From: Iphione sp. A-MEVVRFRX5
Taxonomy: Eukaryota
Direction of reading: 5' to 3'
DNA length: 33,000 nucleotides
Assembly: GCA_976226885.1 (NCBI GenBank)
Contig: OZ320316.1
Location: forward strand, 81,127,001-81,160,000
A program made the translations under genes and the position numbers. This document shows, one piece after another, positions 960 to 21,199 of the stretch (the first letter of the stretch is position 1; each line of letters starts with the position of its first letter). Under the pieces are notes generated by a model, which searched no databases, was not told where the DNA came from, and saw only the letters and a list, made by a program, of their open reading frames with translations.

Positions 960-1955
960 TGAAGAACCCATAATGCAAACGTGCATAGGAGACCAAACTT
1001 CAGACTGGATGATTTTGGTCTCTCCTGCGATTTAGTCTTCTGTGCAAGTTGATAACTATTGTATAAATATAATTTGGGTCTTGGTCTCTCCCTTGGGTTG
1101 GTCTCCCCTGTGGGTCGGGTCTTCAAGTGAGTTTGAGCTGTATATGGATGCAGTTTTCTCTCAACCCAATCCAGAATGTGACAGGAATTAGAAATGTTAT
1201 TGAAATAATCACGAAAGGCCTAATCATGCTATTACTGTTGAATATTGCATATGTCAGGTCATTACTGGACACATCACATTTGCTGTCTGTAGAAAACCAC
1301 CGTGGATTTATCCTACTCAATACTTGCAAAATGAACCATTAATTATTCATCGACATCAGCTTGGCCAGTGAACAGCCACATGTCACCAGTTCCTTGTGAG
1401 GGTTTATTTATCACGTATTAAAAGACTATCCGTGACAAGGTTACGATCTAACAATGAAACTTCTTCCAAACTAGGGAATTTACATATATATATATACCGG
1501 GTACATATATTTGATGATTCAGCAACCAATGAGTGTCGCTTTTCCCTGTGACTCTCAGGTTTTATAGCCGTCTGAATTGATATGTGATGGACTCTCAGAA
1601 GCTTTAAGGTCTTTATGACCAAAACCATGCAAGCATGTGTAAACATCCAGAATTAGTACCAGGACATCTTCTCAAACAAAAATGGCTATATAACAGCTGA
1701 TCATTACCAAAGTTAAAATAAGATATGTCCTCTGTCACAACCTTTCTCCTAATTATCCTATTATATTTTATGAAGGAAATGTGTCTGTAAGGAGATTTCG
1801 CACTCTTGTCGAGCATAGCTAATAAATAATGCAAGTACTAATTGATAATATATTTAAGTTTTTTACTCTTACTGCTTCACTCATTTGCAATGCTTCCTAA
1901 TAGTTGACGAATGCTGCCCTTTACACTTTGAACAATATCTGGCTACCCTTGGCAT
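960..1955 (-). pseudogene. gag-like ORF remnant of the DIRS/Ngaro element
   Basis: An ATG at 1955 opens MPRVARYCSKCKGQHSSTIRKHC (CxxCxxxH...C). Further on come HD*AFRDYF (cf. YDxxFR) and ILDWVE. The region lies directly upstream of the RT remnant. Confidence 0.55.
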
Positions 1956-1984
1956 AACAAAAGATGTTGCTCGTTGATACATGC

Positions 1985-2640
1985 CTTATCAGCATACTAT
2001 TTCAGTTTTAAGTGACAGTTGGTAACAATATACTCCATACATAACAGATATCATAAAGTGATCTTTTATTGTAGCTTTATTAATGGTGCATTCCCATGCC
2101 ACTCTAAAATTGACTATTTGGCATATATATGAATATATACGCTTCATAGTAACACCCATGACCCGACAAATTGTATAAGCTCCTAAAATAGCTAAATTCA
2201 TAAGGAATAGCACATATATATATGTATTGTATAGATTTGGTTGTCTTTCCAGCCTGTATATAATATGGGGTGTTTCTAATAGAAGGTGCCCTTACTAGAG
2301 GGGTTCCACCATATTTCACATAGACTGCACTAGTCACAGAGGATTGTGCAGTAATTCTGCATGTGTTTTTCGTAAGGTCCATTTCTTTTTGAAAGTTTGG
2401 CTGAATAATCCTAATTTAATACACTAATGTAAGATAGCATTCAATATTCTCCCTGGTAACATTGAAAGAGGTACTTTTGCCATCTCACGAACTCTAATGA
2501 AAGAGATGACTTGATTCTTGAATGTATTTAGGGGCTTCCTTTTACCTTTAGTCAAGGTATCGATTTTGATTTTCTTCTGTGATGAGAAATTAAAAACTTA
2601 AGTATTATGAACCACTAGCCAGTGGGTGATGTCCACCAAG
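1985..2640 (-). pseudogene. Tyrosine recombinase remnant
   Basis: Fragments: ITHWLVVHN..DTLTKGKRK (N-terminal part), VTRENIE, ELLHNPL*LVQSM*NM (cf. PLCPV), and RIYSYICQIVNFRVAWECTINKATIKDHFMIS, which roughly matches the spacing of YSxHSFRRGGATxAxECGIxxxxIKxHGxWxS. The catalytic HxxR is eroded. Confidence 0.55.
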
Positions 2641-9889: not shown

Positions 9890-10075
9890 TATTGAATTTG
9901 ACGAGTAAGGGTCCTAAAAGTACTGAATTTGATGATTAGGAATCCTAAAAGTACTGAATTTGACCAGTAAATGTCCAAAAAGTACTGAATTTGATGCTAA
10001 AGAGTCCTAAAAGTACTGAATTTGACGAGTTAAAGTCAAAAAACTACTGAATTTGATGATTAAGAGTCCGAAAAG
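9890..10075. repeat. 31-bp minisatellite, 6 units, with A/B dimeric higher-order structure
   Basis: Units start at 9890, 9921, 9952, 9983, 10014 and 10045, with core AAAAGTACTGAATTTGA. Odd units continue c(g/c)agt and even units continue tg(a/c)t. Confidence 0.95.
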
Positions 10076-10769: not shown

Positions 10770-11057
10770 AGTATGAGTTAAAATAAAACAAGCAGAAATG
10801 TAAACAAACCACGGTGATGACAATTGCCAGGCTAGGTAGCACCTGCCATACATCGAGATGATGAAAATGTGAGATAAATGAGGAATAACAGAAAAGTGAA
10901 GAAACTGTAGTAATGACACTTACCAGGCTAGGTATGGCTTTCAATACACTGAGATTTGAAAATGTGAGATAAATGAAGAGTTGCAAAAAAGCACAAAAGA
11001 CGTGGTAATGACGCCCATCAGGCTAGGTTATCCTTTAATGCATCGAGGTTTGAAGGT
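10770..11057. repeat. ~96-bp tandem repeat, ~3 units
   Basis: caggctaggt occurs at 10828, 10924 and 11019; tgaaaatgtgagataaatga occurs twice. Confidence 0.85.
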
Positions 11058-12312
11058 ATTAGTGCATGTCAAGATCCCCTGGAAGCCTAGTCCACAGTGA
11101 CAGGCCCACATACCAATAACTTGACCTGAACAATGAAGTCCTCTGCTTATTAATCTAACAGGTACAGCCGATGGATCAATGGTAGTAGTAAGTTTTCACC
11201 CTGTTTAGCAAGTGGCAATATCCCAAATGACCTCCTTGTCGATGTCACACTTTTCCTTGTTGTTGAACCTATATATGAATGACCTGAAGCGATCTGTTGT
11301 ATTCTATATGGCGGGTGTCTAATAATTTCGTTTTGCTCATAAGAAATAGTAGACCATAATCCACTAGTGGAGCCAAAACGACTTGCACAGTTTTGCTTAA
11401 TTCCCAAATGGCAGGTGGAATGTTAGCTTTCTGATATAGTACATCCTGACTCTTAATTTCTTTCTAATACATTGTACCATTGGTACCCAGATGAGTCGCT
11501 CGTATAGCCCAGGAATTTACAGGCCACCTCTTTTTCGATAGTCAACAACCCTAGAGTTACGTTCAACTTGAAGGGGATGCTTTTGCTGAACACCATACAA
11601 AAAGTTTTCTCACCATTTATTATCAGACCTGTTTTATTAGCCCATGTAGGTTTCGATATCAGGTAAACCCCTCTGCGACTTAAAACAAAGGGCGAGGACT
11701 ATAGTGAACAATATAATCATCCGCGTACATTAACAATTTCATAACTACCTGGGTCTTCGGCCTGTCATTAACGACCATCGAAAACAGGAGAGACCCCGTC
11801 AGGCTGCCCTGAGGGACCCCACACTTCACTTAAGTCATTATCGTTACATCTAACATACCATTGTCTGCCAGTCAAGTAAGGTGTAATTCACTATAATGTT
11901 CGATGTCCCATTTTGGCCTCAACACACTTTGAAATTATACACAATGGATTATTACACCAAACACCTTAGAGAGATCGATAAAAACAGCAGCAAAGTGACT
12001 TCTCCTATCGATTGTTTCATACACATTTCATAGAAACACCGCCAGGGTAGTTGCAGTGCCTCTCCTTGGCCTGAACTCATGTTGCTCCACACAATGGTAC
12101 TTAGTCTGACAGAGGTAGTCCATAATCAGATCAAACACTACTTTTTCAATAACCCTTCCTATCATGGGCAGTATAGCCACAAGCCGGTAATTCGTTTTCA
12201 GTGAAGTACTACCTTTCTCATACAGTGAAGCTACTCTTACCATTTTACATGAGTTTGGGAACATCCCACTCGAGTTTTATTTATTACATCCCTAACAACC
12301 AAAGCTGAGAGC

Positions 12313-12388
12313 AACAACAGTGTGGACCTGTGAGGTCTGTTGCACCCTGCGATAAACTGCCCAGGTGTGTGTGGGGGGTGGAGAGAGA

Positions 12389-12431
<43 letters not shown>

Positions 12432-12928
12432 GGAGAGAGACAGTGAATGAGTGTGTGTGTGTGGTGTCTCTCTCTTTACAGCCACCTTGATTGACACCTT
12501 GTCTTGGGGTCGTTGGCTAGGCTTGTTTAAGTCTTTCAGGTTTACAACCCTCAGTTCTGCATGACTGAGCACTGAGCACCAGACTGCTACAAGCTGATAC
12601 TGGTAGAAGGGAGATATTGGTGAGTGTGTATGTGTACATGTATATGCATTGTCAGACCTAGAAATCTCTAAACCAGGTATGTATATTTGTAGTTGTGTTA
12701 GCAAAAGAGTAAAATTGGTACAATTTCACCTTCAAAATACTTGAATTACCACCAAATTACCCAGTGCCATGGGGCCTTATATACCAATATCATATACATG
12801 TATTAAAAATCAGTCCTTTTAAGTGAAGGTTTTGAGACTTATAGGACCCACAAGAGTGTGACCGAAGGTCAGGACAACCAGCCAGCAGCATTCCTAATGT
12901 CCCCCCTCTATGAGGTGGGGGACAATAA
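12313..12928 (-). mobile_element. Helentron-associated non-autonomous element (HINE/DINE-1-like), copy 1, inserted in LINE ORF2
   Basis: Aligns end to end, inverted, with 30461-31124. It has a terminal hairpin gtcccccctc-tat-gaggtgggggac, a (GA)n/(GT)n microsatellite, and a small gacct/aggtc stem-loop at the other end. LINE coding sequence resumes on both sides. Confidence 0.85.
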
Positions 12929-13503
12929 CACATTCTTGCTGACTCTGATAGATGCATTTTAGTAGCCACTTGGCTTGTTCACTTCCAGGCAACAGTAATG
13001 GGTTTGATGTCCCATTTGCCTTAGACATTACACATACTAGGCAGATCCAAATCCAAACTGTCAGGAATTTTAGCTGGTCCGGCACAAACTATTCACTGAG
13101 GATATTTGGAACCTCTGTGACACTCAGCCACTTTTCCTCTTCTTTCAGTTTAATGAACAATTATTACTGCGACCCAGAATCTCTGAATGATCAATCGGCA
13201 ACAATCCATGACATTACAGCATGAATCTAGTCTTTGAGCAATCCCTGATACTACAACATGAAGCTAGCCTATTAGCAATATACTGTTTCATAGGCTTTAT
13301 GACCTACATGCTGCATTTTATTCTTATACAATTGCTTTTGGTGCCTATTCACATAGAAACCCACCAATTAGCAAGGGGTGTTACAGGTCGCTACCCACAC
13401 ACATGTATGTTTCTCTTTCTCTCTATGTTTACAAAATGGCATAGGACTGCAGTGCGTTATCCCAATGAAGACATCATCACAGGAATTTCCTCTTGCCATA
13501 TCC

Positions 13504-13567
13504 CTGCACCTAACTGAAAAAGTAGTCCAAATTCACTGCACCTAACTGAAAAAGTAGTCCAAATTCA
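13504..13567. repeat. Perfect 32-bp tandem duplication
   Basis: ctgcacctaactgaaaaagtagtccaaattca occurs twice in tandem. Confidence 0.95.
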
Positions 13568-14087
13568 CACAATTTTCGTTTGTTGTATCTTTTATGACAG
13601 AAAACATGCCATTTTCGATGGTTTGAAAAAGTATCAACACAAACATCAGAAAATAAGCAACTTATGAGGCTTTGAAAGTATCTCCCACCCATGGGAACTC
13701 CTCCCCATGGCCAGTACTACTTTCATGCAATGTTCTGTATAGGTAATATAAAAATGTTGATATCCTCAGGTTGTCTATATTTCCTGTAGATATTAAGTTA
13801 AACAGAAAATAGTGGCATTCACGGGTAAGCTCAACGACTTCCTGATTGGACATTACTCCTCGCACTCTCTAAACTATAATTTTGTTGGGACAGATCTTTT
13901 GTTGCTTTTTCAACAGCTGCTAGTAAGGCATCCCCCCTCTTCTCTGCCGGTATCATGGTGTCTCAAGTGGTTTATCATGTTTAATGATGCCCGAGCACAG
14001 CAGTCACTCATAGACAGTGGACACCCACCTTCAGACACCCATTTTACTGTCCCATACACTGATTTTACAGGGTTTACAGCGGACATC

Positions 14088-14289
14088 CACCCTGGAGAAG
14101 GCCTCTTGTCCACTCCTTTGTGGTAGCTCACACCTGGGAGAGGTATGACCTCATCCCCACACCCTGGAGAAGGCCTCTTGTCCACTCCTTTGTGGTAGCT
14201 CACACCTGGGAGAGGTATGACCTCATCCCCACACCCTGGAGAAGGCCTCTCGTCCACTTCGTTGATGGATACTAATACCTGGGAGAGGT
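14088..14289. repeat. 72-bp tandem repeat, ~2.8 units
   Basis: caccctggagaaggcctc occurs at 14088, 14160 and 14232. The minus strand encodes the 24-aa repeat DKRPSPGCGDEVIPLPGVSYHKGV. Confidence 0.95.
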
Positions 14290-14763
14290 GTAAGGTGTTG
14301 GTAGAGATGTTAGTGCTACCACTCCTGCCTAACAGAGCTCTATCATTGATCTATAATTATTGCTTATTTGAAAGGTTTTTCGTGTAGATACATGTACATG
14401 TATATGTATGTATAACTTATAAGAAGTCATTAACTTTCATAACTTTCATTACATACATGATTATAGATTATTGATCTATAATTATTGCTTATTGGGACCT
14501 TATAAGTACAGAGCCCCAACAAATCCAGGAGATAATGTAAACAGTATGTAAGATAGTAAAAGGTTAGTAAGACTTACCTTCATCATAGATAAACATAACA
14601 ACTGGTTCATGGGCTTCAAGCCCAGATGCCTCTGTGTTCAACAGCGGCACACAATTTCAAACTAATGGTGAGTTCACTGCAAGCACTTAGATAAATGTCA
14701 TTATGTCAATTGAAACTAATTGTAATCCAGTTAGTACAGAACAGTGATGTCGAAATACCCATG

Positions 14764-15959
14764 TCAGGTACTCCCAGTCCCTAGTGCAAGAAAGGCCTTA
14801 TCGCATTGCGTTAGTGTTCGTGCAGACTCCAATATTGAACATAGAATGTTCTTGCCAGGCCTGTCCCTATTTGCACCTATTTGCACTACCCGCCCCAAAG
14901 TAGGTGTCCCTACTATTCTGTGCTAGGTATTCGTTGCCCGTGGACAACAAACGTACCCTGAAGCAAATACACTGTGCTACTCTGTGGTGGATTACATCTT
15001 GCATTTATAAGGTTTTTGCAGTCAGAGCTCCACTTCACTGTTGTTTCAATCATCACACCTATCCTCTTAGCTTCGGGTAGATCAGCAGCATGCATGATAT
15101 CATTTGCCTTGGTCTCTTGATTATGGTAACTGTTCTTTGCAATCTGTTTGCATGCTCAGCACTCTGGTGCTGCACACCTTCAAACTTGAAACACTCCACA
15201 TACAGGTTGGAGAGAAGATGGTTAGGGGGGGCTGAAAGGCAACAATCTCATCTGTTTCGTTGGTGTAGGCTTTCTCTGCACTTATCCCATCAGGTAGTTG
15301 GGACAGCTCCTTTGTCGGCTCGCAGGTTTACTCTTGTCATGGATGACTGCATTACTTGATGCCTCGCCTCCCTGGCAATAGCAAGTAGCAGTATGTGAGT
15401 AGGTTGGCACTCCTAGGTTAGGTCTTCTCTCATCATCATAAATTGATAATCCTCTAATTGATGTAAGAACGAACGACCATTGAAGACACGATCTCTGATT
15501 GCCATTGATTGGAAGGTTACCAGCACTTGTCTTGCCCTTGGTCTATTGGCATGCATTTTCCCTAATCGCTTCACTGAGGCAATATCATGACCAACAGTAC
15601 CAGCATGGGCCCGCTGAAGGACATCAATGACATCACTCCGTAGGTCTTCATCTGCAAGGTCCTGCAGGCTCTCGATCATTATATTCACCTTTTTTTTTTA
15701 ATTTCTTGGTCAAGCAGGCCTTGGTGCATGGCTTGTGCGGAAGTGTCAATTTCGTTAACCTTAGCAGACAACCAGTGCATGTCCACTGCAAATGTCTTAA
15801 ATTCACGGATGTCTTCAGCTGGCTTGCCTTGGAGGAGTTTGCAATCCTAGAGCCTAGATCACTGACCTTTTTCTGCAGATCGGTGATCAAACCATCCACT
15901 TCCCCAGCACGGGTCTCCAGGGTGACTATCCTGTCTGTGTATGTCTTCTCCTGACTCAT
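14764..15959 (-). pseudogene. LINE ORF1 remnant: coiled coil, RRM (L1/Transposase_22-like), linker, NADAR domain
   Basis: Heptad-like MSQEKTYTDRIVTLETRAGEVDGLITDLQKKVSDL; RRM-like NIMIESL..EDL..DIASVKRLGK..RQVLVTF..RDRV..MREDLT (15413-15688); linker ELSQLPDGISAEKAYTNETDEIVAF; then NADAR; stop codon at 14764-14766. Confidence 0.85.
14818..15240 (-). pseudogene. NADAR (YbiA-like) domain, frameshifted
   Basis: Reconstructed: AF/NHLLSNLYVECFKFEGVQHQSAEHA/QIAKNSYHNQETKANDIMHAADLPEAKRIGVMIETTVKWSSDCKNL/MQDVIHHRVAQCICFRVRLLSTGNEYLAQNSRDTYFGAGSANR/DRPGKNILCSILESAR. This follows the YbiA motif order FSNF..G..W.TSEHYFQ..K..I..A..G..W..M..KF.Q..LLAT..LVE..D.YWG.G..GKN.LG.LLMELR. Confidence 0.88.
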
Positions 15960-18009
15960 CTTGGCAAGGAATAGTTGTTAATTGCGAATTAAAACCGCTA
16001 ACCAGTGTGTAGTGGGTAGGCTAGATAACTGCTCCAAGTCTGGAAAGACTATCTCATCACGATTCAAGGAAGGATGATCCCTTCTGTCGGACAGAGCATT
16101 GGGCAGGAATACGAGTGGCTGTGACGAGTGGAACCTTGCTCTCAATGCACACTTCCCCTACTTATCAACTTGTCTTCGTTCCTAATCATAGCTACCGTCG
16201 TCTGCAGAACTACCAGACAGCTGTAGTTGGCCTACTGTTCCTTGGATGGAGTTTCAGGGTTATTTTCCCTAGGTATGTAACTTATTTAGGGAATCACTGT
16301 GTGTACATTGCCGGATTGTCCGTCACACGTCTGTATTCCGCCATGCCTAAACTGGCATACTGTATGACCGACAACTCTCGGACTTAAACTAATACAAACT
16401 GTATATTCTATATACATGTATATGTACAATGAAATCCATGATTACTTTATAGGCAAACATCACTTGATCAGTAATACTGTCAATGGAATAGTGCGATATA
16501 CTGAACATCTTACAAGGCAGTCGCAACTATCAGGTGCTGTCTTAAAAGAAAACAAAATGACACGTAGACATGAAGAAAGTACGTTGTTTCTTTGGTGGTA
16601 TGAGTGATTGAGCGAGTATCCACGACGTCTTTCACATACGTTTCGTGTGGTGTGATCGTATGGTTGCTTGAGGATCGCATGATTATTTTCAGGCGTGAAT
16701 AATATGAAGTGCATTGTGCATATATTTGCATGTGAGTGTACAGGTATCTGTCAGCGTGTCCTGGTGCGTGAAATATATATGATTGTATGCTGTTTGGTCT
16801 GATTGATGTCTGCCATTATGTGGAAGTCTTTGTGACTACGTTTGGTAGTGGTACTGTTTCAGCGCTTGTTATAATATTCCAGTTTACATTTGTGCATCAA
16901 TAACGCAAGTGTGAACGCATGTATAGAACAGTCAGTTTTGTCTGATGCACGGGATGTAAACTTTTTAGTTGTCTGATTTATGGTCTGGTGAATATGTTGA
17001 ATTACAGACACCAGACATGGAAGGCTGCGTTATGCCAGAGACCACAACGAACTACATGTACTATGGAATAATTGATATTACCTTTTGTGCTACATTTGGA
17101 AATTAGGGGAGATGAATGTTAATGATATGGCATGATCGTTTTTCGTGGCGTGAAGAGTGGTACAGGACCATGTGGTGTATAAGACACAGTTGCTATAACA
17201 AGGCCGGTCGATATACAGTATGCTCTGTCTTATAGCTGGTTAAGTGCGCTAAGGCAAAGTTTACATGGCCAAGTCGCTGCAGCACATCGTCAATCTAAGA
17301 TACATGCATATGTCTAGGTGTTGTATGTGCTGCATTGTCCGCCCTTCTTTGGGGAGCTTGCGGCCTGTTGCATTCATTCATCTATCTACCACTGTGTCTG
17401 TCTCTCATCTTGCTCCACTCAGTCATGAATGGCAAACACTATCGGTCTTCTCAAAGGCTGATCTCGACCTGTCCTTTTGACTGTAAACCATTGTGTCATA
17501 TCACTAAGTGTGAAGTACATACGACAAAACTTCGCTTCATGAAAGGCAAGTGTACAGAGTGATAGAGATTAAAAATGAAATGGTTCCCAGACATGCCAAA
17601 CGACGAATCCTTCATCAAATCAACAGAACAAATGCTGTGCTGCACGGAGTAAGGTTGACATTTTTTAGGATCTTATCTAATGCATATCTATACATGTACA
17701 TGCACTGCTGGAATGTTCACATATCTATGTTACTTCGCTTGGTAAATAGCCATGCATACCAGATGCAGCGTCATCTTGGCCGTTTTGAAGTACATGCGCA
17801 CATACATTGTAAATTCGCTTAATTTCGTCAGTGTTTTGTGAATTTTCACGATACCACTGACCACCCATCTTTAACATTTTATAGTGGGCTGTCTGCCATT
17901 GAATCTATATATGGAAGTTTAATTTGATTTGAATCGGTGTTTTTGTCGTGCATTTAAATGATATGCTAAATATGTACTGATGAATAATGTGTGATATAAG
18001 TGAAGTCGA

Positions 18010-18972
18010 CTCCCCGCCACTCTCAGTCCACACATCGGTCAGCAGTCATGATTTATCCCATATTCACAATTAAAAGTGGGCTTCTTGACACATTTCACCC
18101 TCGTCCCTATTTAGAGATGGCCGGTGAGGGTCGCACATGCCTCCACTAGAAGCAGCCCCTCCTCGATCGTCACTCCGGCGGCGTCCACAAGGTGTACAGG
18201 GATCGCAACACAGCTCAAGTGTATTGCTGCTGAGGATCTGGCGACCTCCTCTCGCGGCGCTCTCGGGTCGTTCAAGCAGAACCGCGAGGTTAGCGTTGAG
18301 CGGCGCTCACCGCCCAAACAGACCGACTACCTGTCTGCTGCACCTGGCCGCCGGCCGTGTGGCGTGCGCTGGCTCAACATACCTAGTCTTGCCGACACGC
18401 AGGTGTCTGCTGTTGGTCGTCTGCTGGCTGGGATCGCGGTTGGCTCGCTGCTGTCGGCCGGTGTTTCTCTTGCTGTCGACTAACCCTTTTGCAGCACAGC
18501 ACCGCTGTCATCAGCTGGTTCCCGACACCGTCACTGCTATTGCAGGTGTTGCTAGGACTATCACCACCAGCGTTTGCCTCCCTCACCGAATGAGATATTG
18601 AAGGCCAGTGGACTCCATGCACACAGTAACAGGCCAGGCTGGATTATTTTACCCCTAAGTCTCTTGTCAGCCCACTGGATTTACTCTCATACTCACCTGC
18701 AGTTGCTGTAGTGTAGTAGCCGCAGTCGTGCGATCACCCTCACGACTTCTACAGTAGCACTAGAATGACAGCCACACATTGAGAATTCACCATCTCCCCA
18801 CGGCTTTGCAACCTGCTGCAAACTTTCTTACAAATAGAGGTCACAAGAGAACTTTCCCTCTGCACATAGCGATCAGACATCAGGATCTATTCCACTTCTT
18901 TATGAATACCCTAACGGCCTAGCCCTGGATTTCATTACGGATTTTTTGGAGTTCGTGGGCAGTGGCGGGGAG
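18010..18972. mobile_element. Putative CpG-rich non-autonomous DNA element bounded by 12-bp inverted repeats
   Basis: CTCCCCGCCACT (18010-18021) and AGTGGCGGGGAG (18961-18972) are perfect inverted copies enclosing a markedly GC/CpG-rich block. No clear target-site duplication. Confidence 0.4.
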
Positions 18973-21199
18973 GACACCGACATGTCTGCCCTGCCAGGGT
19001 TCGACGTTCTTCCGAAGGAGCTGAGGTAGGTTAACTTTCAAATAAGATTGTTTGACCAAAAAGGTGAAATAAATGCAGACGAACTTTAATATTCAAATGC
19101 CCTGACAATGCCTATCCGAAGACATCAAAGACGCATGGCTCGTTACTACATATTCCCAAAGATCACTATCGATATTCTGAAACAGAAGCATTTCACCGCT
19201 TCCTTAAAAGAATACTCATGGCTGTGATATTAAAGGTAAGGCTGAGCTGTTTCAAACCCACATTCCATCACTTTCAAAGCCGGCCGGCGACGTAAGCAGT
19301 GAGGGGTTCCAAAATGGAGGGAGATCAAGACCCTCAGGCTTGACCAGACCGGGCCAGTTCGATTGGCGGGCCCCACTGGCTTATGTATTTGACCTCAATT
19401 ACCTCTGAAAATATCTAATCTGACTGTGTACCACGGGCTCTATCTCACGAATGTGAAGCGCCCTAATTGATGAGGACGAGGTCTATTTTAGGGATAAGAC
19501 ACAAAGGTTAAGGTTAACTGATCACCAGCTACGCATGTAAGGGTTTGAATGACTTGTTATAGTAATCAGGCTGCGCTAAAACGCCACTTACACAACCAAT
19601 ACGCTATTTTGTCACCCACCAGAGGACGATAAGTGCATGATTTTGTAGCCCTAATTTTCCTTAGACGAGACCCGTCATCAACTGGAATGACGAAAGATGC
19701 ATCCTCAATATAATAGTGATACATTCATGAATCATATAACACTTGTTGATGAGCATTGGCTGATCGTGCTCTGATATATTATTGGACCTGATTATATGTA
19801 AAGCAGAACAATTTACATACCACGATATTATTAGGAGTTCATACTACTGCCGAGTTCAGTGTCACAGAGGACACAGATTAATCAGACAGATCTTTTCAAG
19901 AGTGGAGGAAGATGGATTTATTATTGCTTTAGTTAATGAAGCATTTGTATTGGCTGGTGGCATATTGCTCACTTTTTCTGGTATATACCAATTTGAAATC
20001 TATAGAGCCATTAAGCACTGCTTCAAATGAATGAGATGACTGATATATTTTACAGAATGCCCCCAAAAACGTCCGATATAATCCCTCGGTTTTCTACAAC
20101 TTTCCGCAAGAAAAGTATGTCTTCCACCTATACTGAGGCACCTATGCGAATAGAGCTAGAAACTCCATATACGAAGGGCACTTTTCTCTCTCGATACCCG
20201 TCGTTAGTATACAGCTTAAGTTGCACGTGTCATCCGGCCGTGCATTTTAAACAGGTCTATCAACGTGCATTGACTACAACTGATCCTAACACCCTGACAC
20301 TTTGGGGCTAAACAACTGTTGGCATCGAGGGTATGAGCGAACGCTTTACAAAAGGGGTGTACGAGTGATAGTTTTATGGGTGAGACAATTGCACCCAGAG
20401 GACTCTTCCTCTGATTCGAAACCTGAGATTAGCTGGTGCAATGGTGATAGCTACACCCCACTTTCTATGGCTGGTTCTGCACCTTTGATATTGTCTAGAC
20501 GGTACGTTTTGATTCAGTTGAACCAGAGAGCCTCACACAAGAGGCATGACCAGAACGGTTTTCTTTAATATAAATCGATTTGATCTACTTCAAATAACAA
20601 TAGTCATTTCGTCGCTAAACAAGAAACAACAATAAAAGAACCGTGGTATGTGCGAGTATATTCCAAGACGGAGTGGTTCGGTTTAAGTCTCTACCCAAAT
20701 AGTACAGTGTAAAGGGGTAATTGTCTTCGTAGTATATTTGACCTACATTCTTAACTGCTTTCCGTTTGGGTGCCGTTCGAATAACTTATTTGTGTCTACG
20801 GTAGACATACATTTTTATTGGAGACAAAATAATATGAAATCATTCATTTTAATCGGTAAATGCTGACCACAATGGAGAACCACGTTCATATATAATCTCT
20901 CTATGCACACCAGACATTATATAATTTTATTGTATATAAACAAAATGTTTTCCTCTCTTATTGAAGAGACCATTACGGGGTCGTAGCAGTTATCGCTTTT
21001 TTACTGTTGCTAATCAAGGTTTTTTTCTGTGTTCGTTGGTGGAAAGGATTAGAAGCTAAGTACGAGAACGTGTAGATAGCTGAAAAATCCGAGCAACCAT
21101 TGGTAATTTTTCTCTCCCTATTTTATGCAGAGACACGCCTCTGCGTTGGAGTGGAACTAACACTCTTGTCGTTGTCGAAAGTCACTCTTACAGTATGCT

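Follow-up and report, generated by a model that had tools for sequence, protein, structure and literature searches.

A predicted YbiA-family NADAR hydrolase domain in ORF1 of a diverse group of non-LTR retrotransposons from Iphione sp.

The ORF1 proteins that long interspersed nuclear elements (LINEs) encode are seen as RNA chaperones to which few accessory domains are added, namely zinc knuckles, PHD and esterase domains. A 33,000-nucleotide (nt) stretch of the genome of Iphione sp. A-MEVVRFRX5 (contig OZ320316.1, positions 81,127,001 to 81,160,000), here called the window and numbered from its first letter, raises the question of whether such a protein can also carry a NADAR hydrolase domain and, if so, what this domain would do there. 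The first-pass annotation, made from the letters alone, had described on the minus strand of the window a LINE open reading frame 1 (ORF1) of CR1/L2 type with a coiled coil, an RRM and, at the C terminus, a complete NADAR domain broken by about four frameshifts. It had further placed this domain between the RRM and ORF2, proposed that it undoes ADP-ribosylation imposed by the host, and known of no earlier description of such an architecture.

Since the copy in the window is broken, its minus strand was translated in three frames and read piece by piece against a profile that combines 36 ORF1 proteins found intact in this genome, each of them with a Pfam NADAR match of approximately 94 to 109 bits. 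Positions 99 to 503 of the 513-position profile matched 15950-14806(-) in collinear order, which bore out the coiled coil, the RRM and the complete C-terminal NADAR domain. All the pieces lie on the minus strand. The coiled-coil remnant (15950-15804 and 15774-15730; profile positions 99 to 178) matched weakly, contains one frame change and has a heptad-like sequence; a candidate start ATG of this stretch is found at 15959(-). The RRM, which resembles that of L1 ORF1p, gave the strongest match (15694-15416; 67.6 bits, E value of 5e-23) and lies within an uninterrupted 94-amino-acid (aa) piece at 15697-15416(-). It is followed by a linker (15406-15311 and 15315-15211; profile positions 296 to 366, the best piece being 15315-15211 with an E value of 3e-7). 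The NADAR remnant, 15223..14806(-), amounts to approximately 139 aa of the YbiA family split over four frames: 15223-15146 (E value of 1e-7), 15146-15000 (6e-11), 15004-14876 (3e-12) and 14871-14806 (1e-3, all against the ORF1 profile). The four frame changes that the profile pieces reveal at or inside the NADAR domain agree with the number counted by eye, and the motif string reported in the first-pass annotation was recovered on the minus strand (LSNLY, SAEHA, AKRIG, W, RVAQ, LLSTG, D.YFGAG, PGKNIL).

Searched singly against Pfam, the pieces yielded one match to PF08719, the piece 15004-14870(-) (14.9 bits, E value of 0.032, profile positions 93 to 134), and this score is below the Pfam gathering score of 35.1 bits. 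In blastx comparisons with the intact ORF1 proteins, however, the window reached E values down to 9e-28 in matches that span the RRM and the NADAR domain. The NADAR remnant keeps the equivalents of the catalytic-site residues Glu43, Lys50, Trp89 and Asp130 (the Lys50 one in a shifted frame), while the Glu125 equivalent is replaced by Gln and the Trp133 equivalent by Phe. A DNA search of the 1.18-Gb assembly found no copy of the window element besides itself; its closest protein relatives are 28 to 38% identical, and the 150 scored homologues of its RRM share 27 to 38% identity with it. The window copy is non-functional; it is the decayed ORF1 left by an old insertion, present as a single copy, of a retrotransposon without long terminal repeats (non-LTR retrotransposon).

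The relatives of this copy are numerous and in large part intact. A six-frame scan of the genome with PF08719 gave 4,416 first-look candidates, of which 150 were scored; all 150 exceeded the gathering score (93 to 109 bits), mostly within open frames of 500 to 700 aa. Inspection of ten 10-kb loci revealed three ORFs on one strand. ORF1 of the intact relatives comprises 470 to 710 aa and ends in the NADAR domain (Pfam E values of 1e-28 to 1e-31), the middle ORF comprises 212 to 255 aa, and ORF2, 934 to 975 aa long, carries Exo_endo_phos(_2) and RVT_1 (Pfam matches at loci L054, L055, L058, L059 and L060). An intact element measures approximately 7.2 kb and has a 3'-untranslated region of approximately 0.5 kb with an AATAAA signal. 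Two elements on different chromosomes, L060 and L061, align over 7.19 kb at an identity of 96.5%; their 5' and 3' boundaries are sharp, they end in AATAAA and poly(A), and this full-length identity implies that the whole three-ORF unit is mobile as one element; no target-site duplications were evident around either of them. A poly(A) tail follows AATAAA approximately 0.4 to 0.6 kb past ORF2 in eight of nine elements, the remaining one (L058) ending in (AATCTTG)3.

The first-pass annotation had recognized that a one-off insertion into a single LINE would speak against its reading. When loci were chosen by similarity to the window RRM alone, a NADAR domain was present downstream in 19/19 (13 intact and 6 split by a stop or frameshift), and because of this the NADAR domain is to be seen as a fixed part of the RRM-type ORF1 and not as an occasional insertion. 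One continuous RRM-NADAR frame exists in dozens of intact copies, and the combination of RRM and NADAR beside an endonuclease-reverse transcriptase (RT), for which the first-pass annotation had recommended a search, was found both in this genome and in public data where inspected. No copy of the intact element L054 exceeds 71% nucleotide identity, which indicates that the group consists of many old low-copy lineages whose frames have all been kept open. By these sequence comparisons the element group is very large, old and diverse, and we are close to certain that the domain belongs to NADAR-bearing ORF1 proteins of a non-LTR retrotransposon.

The fold of the protein was examined on an AlphaFold2 (AF2) model that covers one intact ORF1 from the RRM to its end, using Foldseek and phmmer against the PDB. 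The RRM and the NADAR domain were each predicted with a predicted local distance difference test (pLDDT) score above 90, and the linker between them (residues 119 to 191) scored below 50, as expected for a disordered segment. The YbiA fold consists of five core helices flanked by small sheets. The best Foldseek matches of the model were the Phytophthora NADAR 8BAU (E value of 6e-10, TM score of 0.70) and E. coli YbiA 2B3W (TM score of 0.75), followed by the RRM of human L1 ORF1p, 2W7A (E value of 6.5e-4), which ranked ahead of cellular RRMs. By sequence, phmmer retrieved the same two hydrolases (2B3W, E value of 1.4e-6; 8BAU, E value of 1.6e-5). The coiled coil of ORF1 was judged from sequence and from weak matches to helical families only, and the Pfam family PF02994 (Transposase_22) matched neither the window pieces nor the intact ORF1 proteins. 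After the RRM the model has a long helix, the linker of approximately 70 disordered residues and the NADAR domain, with no C-terminal domain (CTD) of the L1 type; in the predicted structure the NADAR domain occupies the position that the CTD holds in L1-type ORF1 proteins.

Across the 36 intact ORF1 proteins the NADAR domain is the most conserved part, with a median amino acid identity of 0.34, whereas the RRM reaches 0.29 and the coil 0.14. The first-pass annotation had suggested looking for a ratio of nonsynonymous to synonymous divergence (dN/dS) below 1. The proportion of nonsynonymous differences was lower than that of synonymous ones (pN<pS) in 628/630 pairs, and dN/dS in the five pairs with unsaturated synonymous sites had a median of 0.108 (range, 0.037 to 0.366). 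The NADAR domain is under purifying selection in the living relatives.

The roles of the active-site residues have been established for the P. nicotianae NADAR by structure and mutagenesis (PMC11543638), and we counted their equivalents in 45 diverged NADAR domains of the elements, one per lineage. The Glu43 and Lys50 equivalents are each kept in 44/45 lineages, Trp89 in 45/45, Glu125 in the last strand in 38/45 and Asp130 in 41/45, and the position of Trp133 is occupied by Trp in 30/45 and by Phe in 10/45. A loss of the acidic catalytic residues, which the first-pass annotation had named as evidence against an enzyme, is not what the Glu43 and Asp130 positions reveal. The Glu of the last strand is a mark of the YbiA family (PMC11125620). 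By profile, modelled fold and active-site residues together, the C-terminal domain of the intact relatives is a NADAR superfamily member of the YbiA family, and from the residues it keeps it is likely to be catalytically active in living copies.

As for the origin of the domain, a maximum-likelihood tree placed the 45 transposable-element (TE) NADARs in one clade (SH-aLRT support of 96, on a long stem) beside ordinary animal YbiA-like NADARs; bacterial sequences branch outside. This topology fits a single capture of the domain from an animal gene, although the length of the stem demands caution. The host has a stand-alone NADAR of its own, L001 (C22:27634916-27638365, ORF 1360-1995(-), Pfam 176 bits), whose identity to mollusc, annelid, echinoderm and amphioxus NADARs is 54 to 65%, and no named protein matches it above 65%. 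L001 falls outside the TE clade and shares 30 to 34% identity with the TE-type domains. Several NCBI relatives of L001 bear the name 'irg-1-like'.

The architecture is not confined to Iphione. A profile search of 1.84 billion cluster representatives yielded 2,340 proteins at E values of at most 1e-30, and approximately 140 of the best 150 representatives matched the RRM and the NADAR domain in one stretch. Public RRM-NADAR proteins adjoin ORFs with an apurinic/apyrimidinic endonuclease (APE) and RT where inspected, and the nearest ESM Atlas clusters are eukaryotic with 'commonest Annelida', a label that we take as a lead only. RRM-NADAR loci were retrieved from other public assemblies, L066-L068 from ENA ERZ26222911 and L069/L070 from Logan ERR14368249/8. 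An identical pair of ORF1 (438 aa, with NADAR) and ORF2 (964 aa, APE-RT), with no esterase ORF, recurs there on at least five contigs, and the identity of these sequences suggests a young family; another public-assembly element has a 727-aa ORF1 with NADAR, then a 298-aa ORF and then the APE. At the top of the representative search stood three proteins with many NADAR-like repeats, P0242 (4240 aa, 7 stretches), P0243 (1075 aa, 5 stretches) and P0269 (1580 aa, 6 stretches), which may represent proteins with several NADAR domains, comparable to C. elegans SNA-3, or gene models joined in error.

What, then, could a LINE gain from such a domain? The explanation that we favor overall, and hold with moderate confidence, is a LINE ORF1 whose RRM and active NADAR domain act together on ADP-ribosylated bases in the ribonucleoprotein. 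As ORF1p multimerises on LINE RNA, it would place an active N-glycosidic hydrolase on the ribonucleoprotein, where the NADAR domain could strip guanine (or cytosine) bases of their ADP-ribose, be it in the LINE RNA, in the first-strand cDNA or in the target DNA. Base ADP-ribose adducts would otherwise block or stall translation or reverse transcription, and NADAR would clear them. The domain could in this way serve as a cis-acting module of repair or counter-defence, analogous to the way in which T4-like phages neutralise DarT1 by means of orphan NADARs. All NADARs tested remove ADP-ribose from guanine in DNA, E. coli YbiA included (PMC11125620), and they act on guanine-ADP-ribose in RNA too but not on phosphate-end ADP-ribose (PMC11833690); phages are reported to use orphan NADARs against DarT1 (PMC11825919). 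That the substrate is base-ADP-ribosylated nucleic acid is for us a tentative proposal, and that the LINE NADAR counters a dedicated host defence is doubtful. The broadest scenario is more doubtful still, namely that invertebrate hosts, in this case probably an annelid, hold retrotransposons in check by attaching ADP-ribose to bases of the LINE RNA, of the cDNA or of the nicked target, that a large and ancient LINE radiation escapes by means of a NADAR-bearing ORF1p, and that the SGNH hydrolase encoded by the middle ORF is a second accessory enzyme of the particle.

Several observations weigh against this explanation. The host has its own NADAR (L001), and the need for a private LINE copy is unexplained. 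Synonymous divergence is saturated in most pairs, and the dN/dS estimate rests on the five pairs named above. The last-strand Glu is missing in 7/45 lineages. E. coli YbiA also cleaves intermediates of the riboflavin pathway, which makes a small-molecule substrate possible (PMC11543638). Finally, no host enzyme that ADP-ribosylates guanine emerged: scans of the genome for PF01375 (cholera/pierisin-type), PF03496 (C2/C3-type) and PF14487 (DarT) gave no match, a silence that the control genomes shared. The sole open frame of the ADP-ribosyltransferase family PF01129 that we found, C22:19330202-19330666(-) in locus L071 (C22:19328702-19332166), scored 67 bits in a 308-aa frame and is a candidate only.

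The riboflavin activity leads to the strongest rival, in which the NADAR domain works on a small molecule or on a free NAD or ADP-ribose derivative, either as a YbiA-like N-glycosidase or by interfering with signalling through ADP-ribose or NAD at the endonuclease nick. The YbiA-type Glu in 38/45 lineages, together with the N-glycosidase activity of E. coli YbiA on riboflavin intermediates (PMC11543638, PMC11125620), speaks for it, as does the branching of the TE NADARs beside ordinary animal YbiA-like NADARs. Yet every NADAR tested, that of E. coli included, acts on guanine-ADP-ribose in DNA and RNA, the fusion to an RNA-coating protein argues for a nucleic-acid substrate, and NADARs are inactive on PARP-like phosphate-end ADP-ribosylation (PMC11833690); we consider a small-molecule role unlikely. 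The modelled position of the domain raises another possibility, that the fold merely replaces the L1-type CTD as a structural or nucleic-acid-binding part in which catalysis is irrelevant. NADAR indeed stands where a coil-RRM-CTD protein would have its CTD, no CTD appears in the model, and these elements tolerate dead enzyme folds, since a clade of the SGNH ORF that lacks both Ser and His stays open. A purely structural role, however, would not lead one to expect Glu and Lys in 44/45, Trp89 in 45/45 and Asp130 in 41/45 lineages at approximately 34% identity, and we regard it as quite improbable.

For the window itself, the NADAR scraps might be a chance resemblance, or a piece of the host's NADAR gene that happens to adjoin an unrelated LINE fragment, as the sub-threshold score of the single Pfam match (14.9 versus 35.1 bits) and the lack of a close DNA copy of the window element would allow. 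This was refuted by the collinear coil-RRM-NADAR match and by the shared frame of RRM and NADAR in dozens of intact copies, and the 30 to 34% identity of L001 to the TE type and its place outside the TE clade stand equally against it; its probability is negligible. Our preferred reading is still that of an RRM-NADAR ORF1 with an active hydrolase directed at ADP-ribosylated bases.

The remaining parts of the window element bear on the claim that the NADAR domain lies between the RRM and ORF2 on one strand. An RT remnant of ORF2 was found at 12270-11071(-) (ORF2 profile positions 496 to 930 of 959, several frame changes, E value of 2e-20 for the best piece); it is 37% identical in blastx to aa 478 to 908 of the L058 ORF2, and 12276-12031(-) matches Pfam RVT_1 with an E value of 0.023. 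The strand is therefore as described, while the placement next to ORF2 holds loosely, as approximately 2.5 kb of sequence intervene and only the RT half is left. In 12277..14805 we found no significant match to the middle-ORF or ORF2 profiles and no esterase or endonuclease signal; intact relatives carry the SGNH-esterase ORF and the APE half of ORF2 in the equivalent interval. Tandem Repeats Finder (TRF) reported within it a 72-bp minisatellite of 2.8 copies (14088-14289) and a (GA)30 run (12381-12440). Because the nearest lineage of both remnants is the same (L058/L020), their order is right and their spacing roughly so, the ORF1 and ORF2 remnants are probably parts of the same old element, and two adjacent fragments are a less likely alternative.

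Beyond the element, a 95-bp tandem repeat of 2.3 copies (10813-11028) lies immediately 3' of the ORF2 remnant, a 31/62-bp tandem array occupies 9893-10075, and a GC-rich island (18001-19000; 0.547 versus approximately 0.40 around it) contains a 154-aa ORF with an ATG start at 18137-18601(+). Elsewhere in the genome, short COX1-like fragments at C4:89642397-89642808 (L063, L064) are likely a nuclear copy of mitochondrial DNA, and C89 is the mitochondrial contig, whose COX1 has nine TGA codons, in keeping with the invertebrate mitochondrial code; this COX1 has a clitellate-like appearance, which we again take as a lead only.

The middle ORF of the intact relatives was conserved in 28/29 NADAR-selected loci, at approximately 230 aa and between ORF1-NADAR and ORF2 (for example, L054:6237-6914(-), L060:3029-3727(+) and L058:3741-4376(+)), and SGNH blocks are visible in an alignment of 25 lineages. 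At the sequence level its matches are weak (Pfam E values of 0.03 to 0.1, and marginal GDSL matches in a profile search of PDB sequences). Its AF2 model has a pLDDT of 93.7, all top 50 Foldseek matches are SGNH/GDSL esterases, including PAF-AH, and it is this fold search that settles its SGNH identity. Ser and His are kept in 14/25 lineages, together with Asp and the oxyanion Gly/Asn. In one clade of 11/25 lineages both Ser and His have been lost (SDGRG / DGN[RK]) and the ORF is still open, which recalls non-catalytic SGNH domains such as that of Oskar. Because the young family in other assemblies passes from ORF1-NADAR directly to ORF2, the esterase appears to be optional and NADAR the constant partner of the RRM. 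In some elements (L060:3025-3045, L061:3069-3089 and also L028) the SGNH ORF continues in the ORF1 frame after a single stop, with an ATG approximately 12 nt downstream, an arrangement that suggests termination-reinitiation or readthrough; in other lineages the junction is an overlap or a gap of approximately 330 nt.

The clade of these LINEs is harder to fix. Type II ORF1p also occurs in CR1, L2 and R1 clade elements (PMC4120745), and the ORF1 domains surveyed in Jockey/CR1/L2 were CCHC, RRM/Tnp22, PHD and esterase only (PMC4120745). The CR1/L2-type label of the first-pass annotation is plausible because of the approximately 950-aa ORF2 without CCHC, the SGNH esterase and relatives named 'jockey' by NCBI. 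That name, however, belongs to coral relatives, and instead of the microsatellite-like 3' tail of CR1/L2 elements eight of nine elements have poly(A). In a profile search of the PDB, ORF2 matched L1 ORF2p (E value of 4e-40, APE and RT) and R2 (E value of 2e-28, RT); L1 ORF2p ranks first because it is the sole APE-type LINE in the PDB, and the ranking does not decide the clade. An exclusion of the L1 group based on the lack of a phmmer match to human L1 ORF2p was withdrawn, as the profile search had put L1 ORF2p at the top.

The finding matters chiefly for what it implies about the chemistry that retrotransposons meet in animal cells. On nucleic acids, the only activity firmly shown for NADAR hydrolases is that they take ADP-ribose off guanine and cytosine bases, and thousands of elements carry such a hydrolase joined to an RNA-binding module, with active-site residues that have persisted through deep divergence. 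The pattern points to ADP-ribosylation of bases as a real factor in the life of animal retrotransposons, be it as host restriction or as damage where the element integrates. What animal NADARs do physiologically has been stated to be unknown (PMC11125620), and the LINE NADARs, natural enzymes under strong selection, provide an obvious substrate context in which to test it. In addition, an RRM-type ORF1 and a separate SGNH ORF in one LINE form a combination that is not in published surveys (PMC4120745, PMC3905857).

How do these elements compare with what is known? In the oyster C. gigas, ORF1 proteins of several Tx1 LINE families in Repbase appear to hold a YbiA-family NADAR, and in an Ectocarpus Gypsy lineage a NADAR lies in Pol; the authors suggest a role in processing of the RNA intermediate (PMC12477816, Genome Biology 2025). 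The view of the first-pass annotation that no such description existed must accordingly be given up: the core architecture, NADAR in ORF1, is already noticed there in two sentences without analysis (PMC12477816). In our search for literature linking NADAR, YbiA or DUF1768 to LINEs, no other paper was found, and the scale, the selection evidence and the three-ORF layout seem to be new to the literature. With C. gigas Tx1, compared by its published description only, the Iphione elements share a YbiA-family NADAR inside the non-LTR ORF1 of a spiralian invertebrate; that description contains no selection, active-site or copy-number analysis (PMC12477816).

An ORF2 of the L1/Tx1 type has a C-terminal CCHC motif and a length above 1,200 aa. 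In contrast, ORF2 of the Iphione elements has 934 to 975 aa and no C-terminal CCHC (a search of these proteins for CX(1-4)CX(6-10)HX(3-5)C found none), and an extra SGNH-esterase ORF is usually present; the reading as non-Tx1 follows from the ORF2 length and the missing CCHC only. With the Type II ORF1p of human L1 (PDB 2YKO/2W7A), the Iphione ORF1 has in common a coiled-coil-like N terminus followed by an L1-type RRM, and differs in having no Transposase_22 match and no CTD but a linker and a NADAR domain instead. The Type IV ORF1p of CR1/L2 elements such as zebrafish ZfL2-1 likewise has an SGNH-hydrolase fold encoded 5' of ORF2 (PMC3905857), whereas here the fold forms a separate ORF of approximately 230 aa between the RRM-type ORF1 and ORF2, with no preceding coiled coil. 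Published esterase ORF1 proteins, which are without RNA-binding domains, are the sole ORF1 of their elements, unlike those of Iphione (PMC3905857).

The closest functional parallel lies outside eukaryotes. In the orphan NADARs of T4-like phages and those linked to DarT1, a mobile element likewise has a NADAR of its own, which in phages removes guanine ADP-ribosylation imposed by host defence (PMC11825919, PMC11543638). The bacterial and phage proteins stand alone and have Asp or His in the last strand, whereas the LINE NADAR is YbiA-type, with Glu, has no known opposing transferase and is fused to an RNA-binding protein. If the proposed role is true, restriction by base ADP-ribosylation and its reversal by LINE NADARs would be the eukaryotic counterpart of the conflict between DarT1 and phage NADARs.

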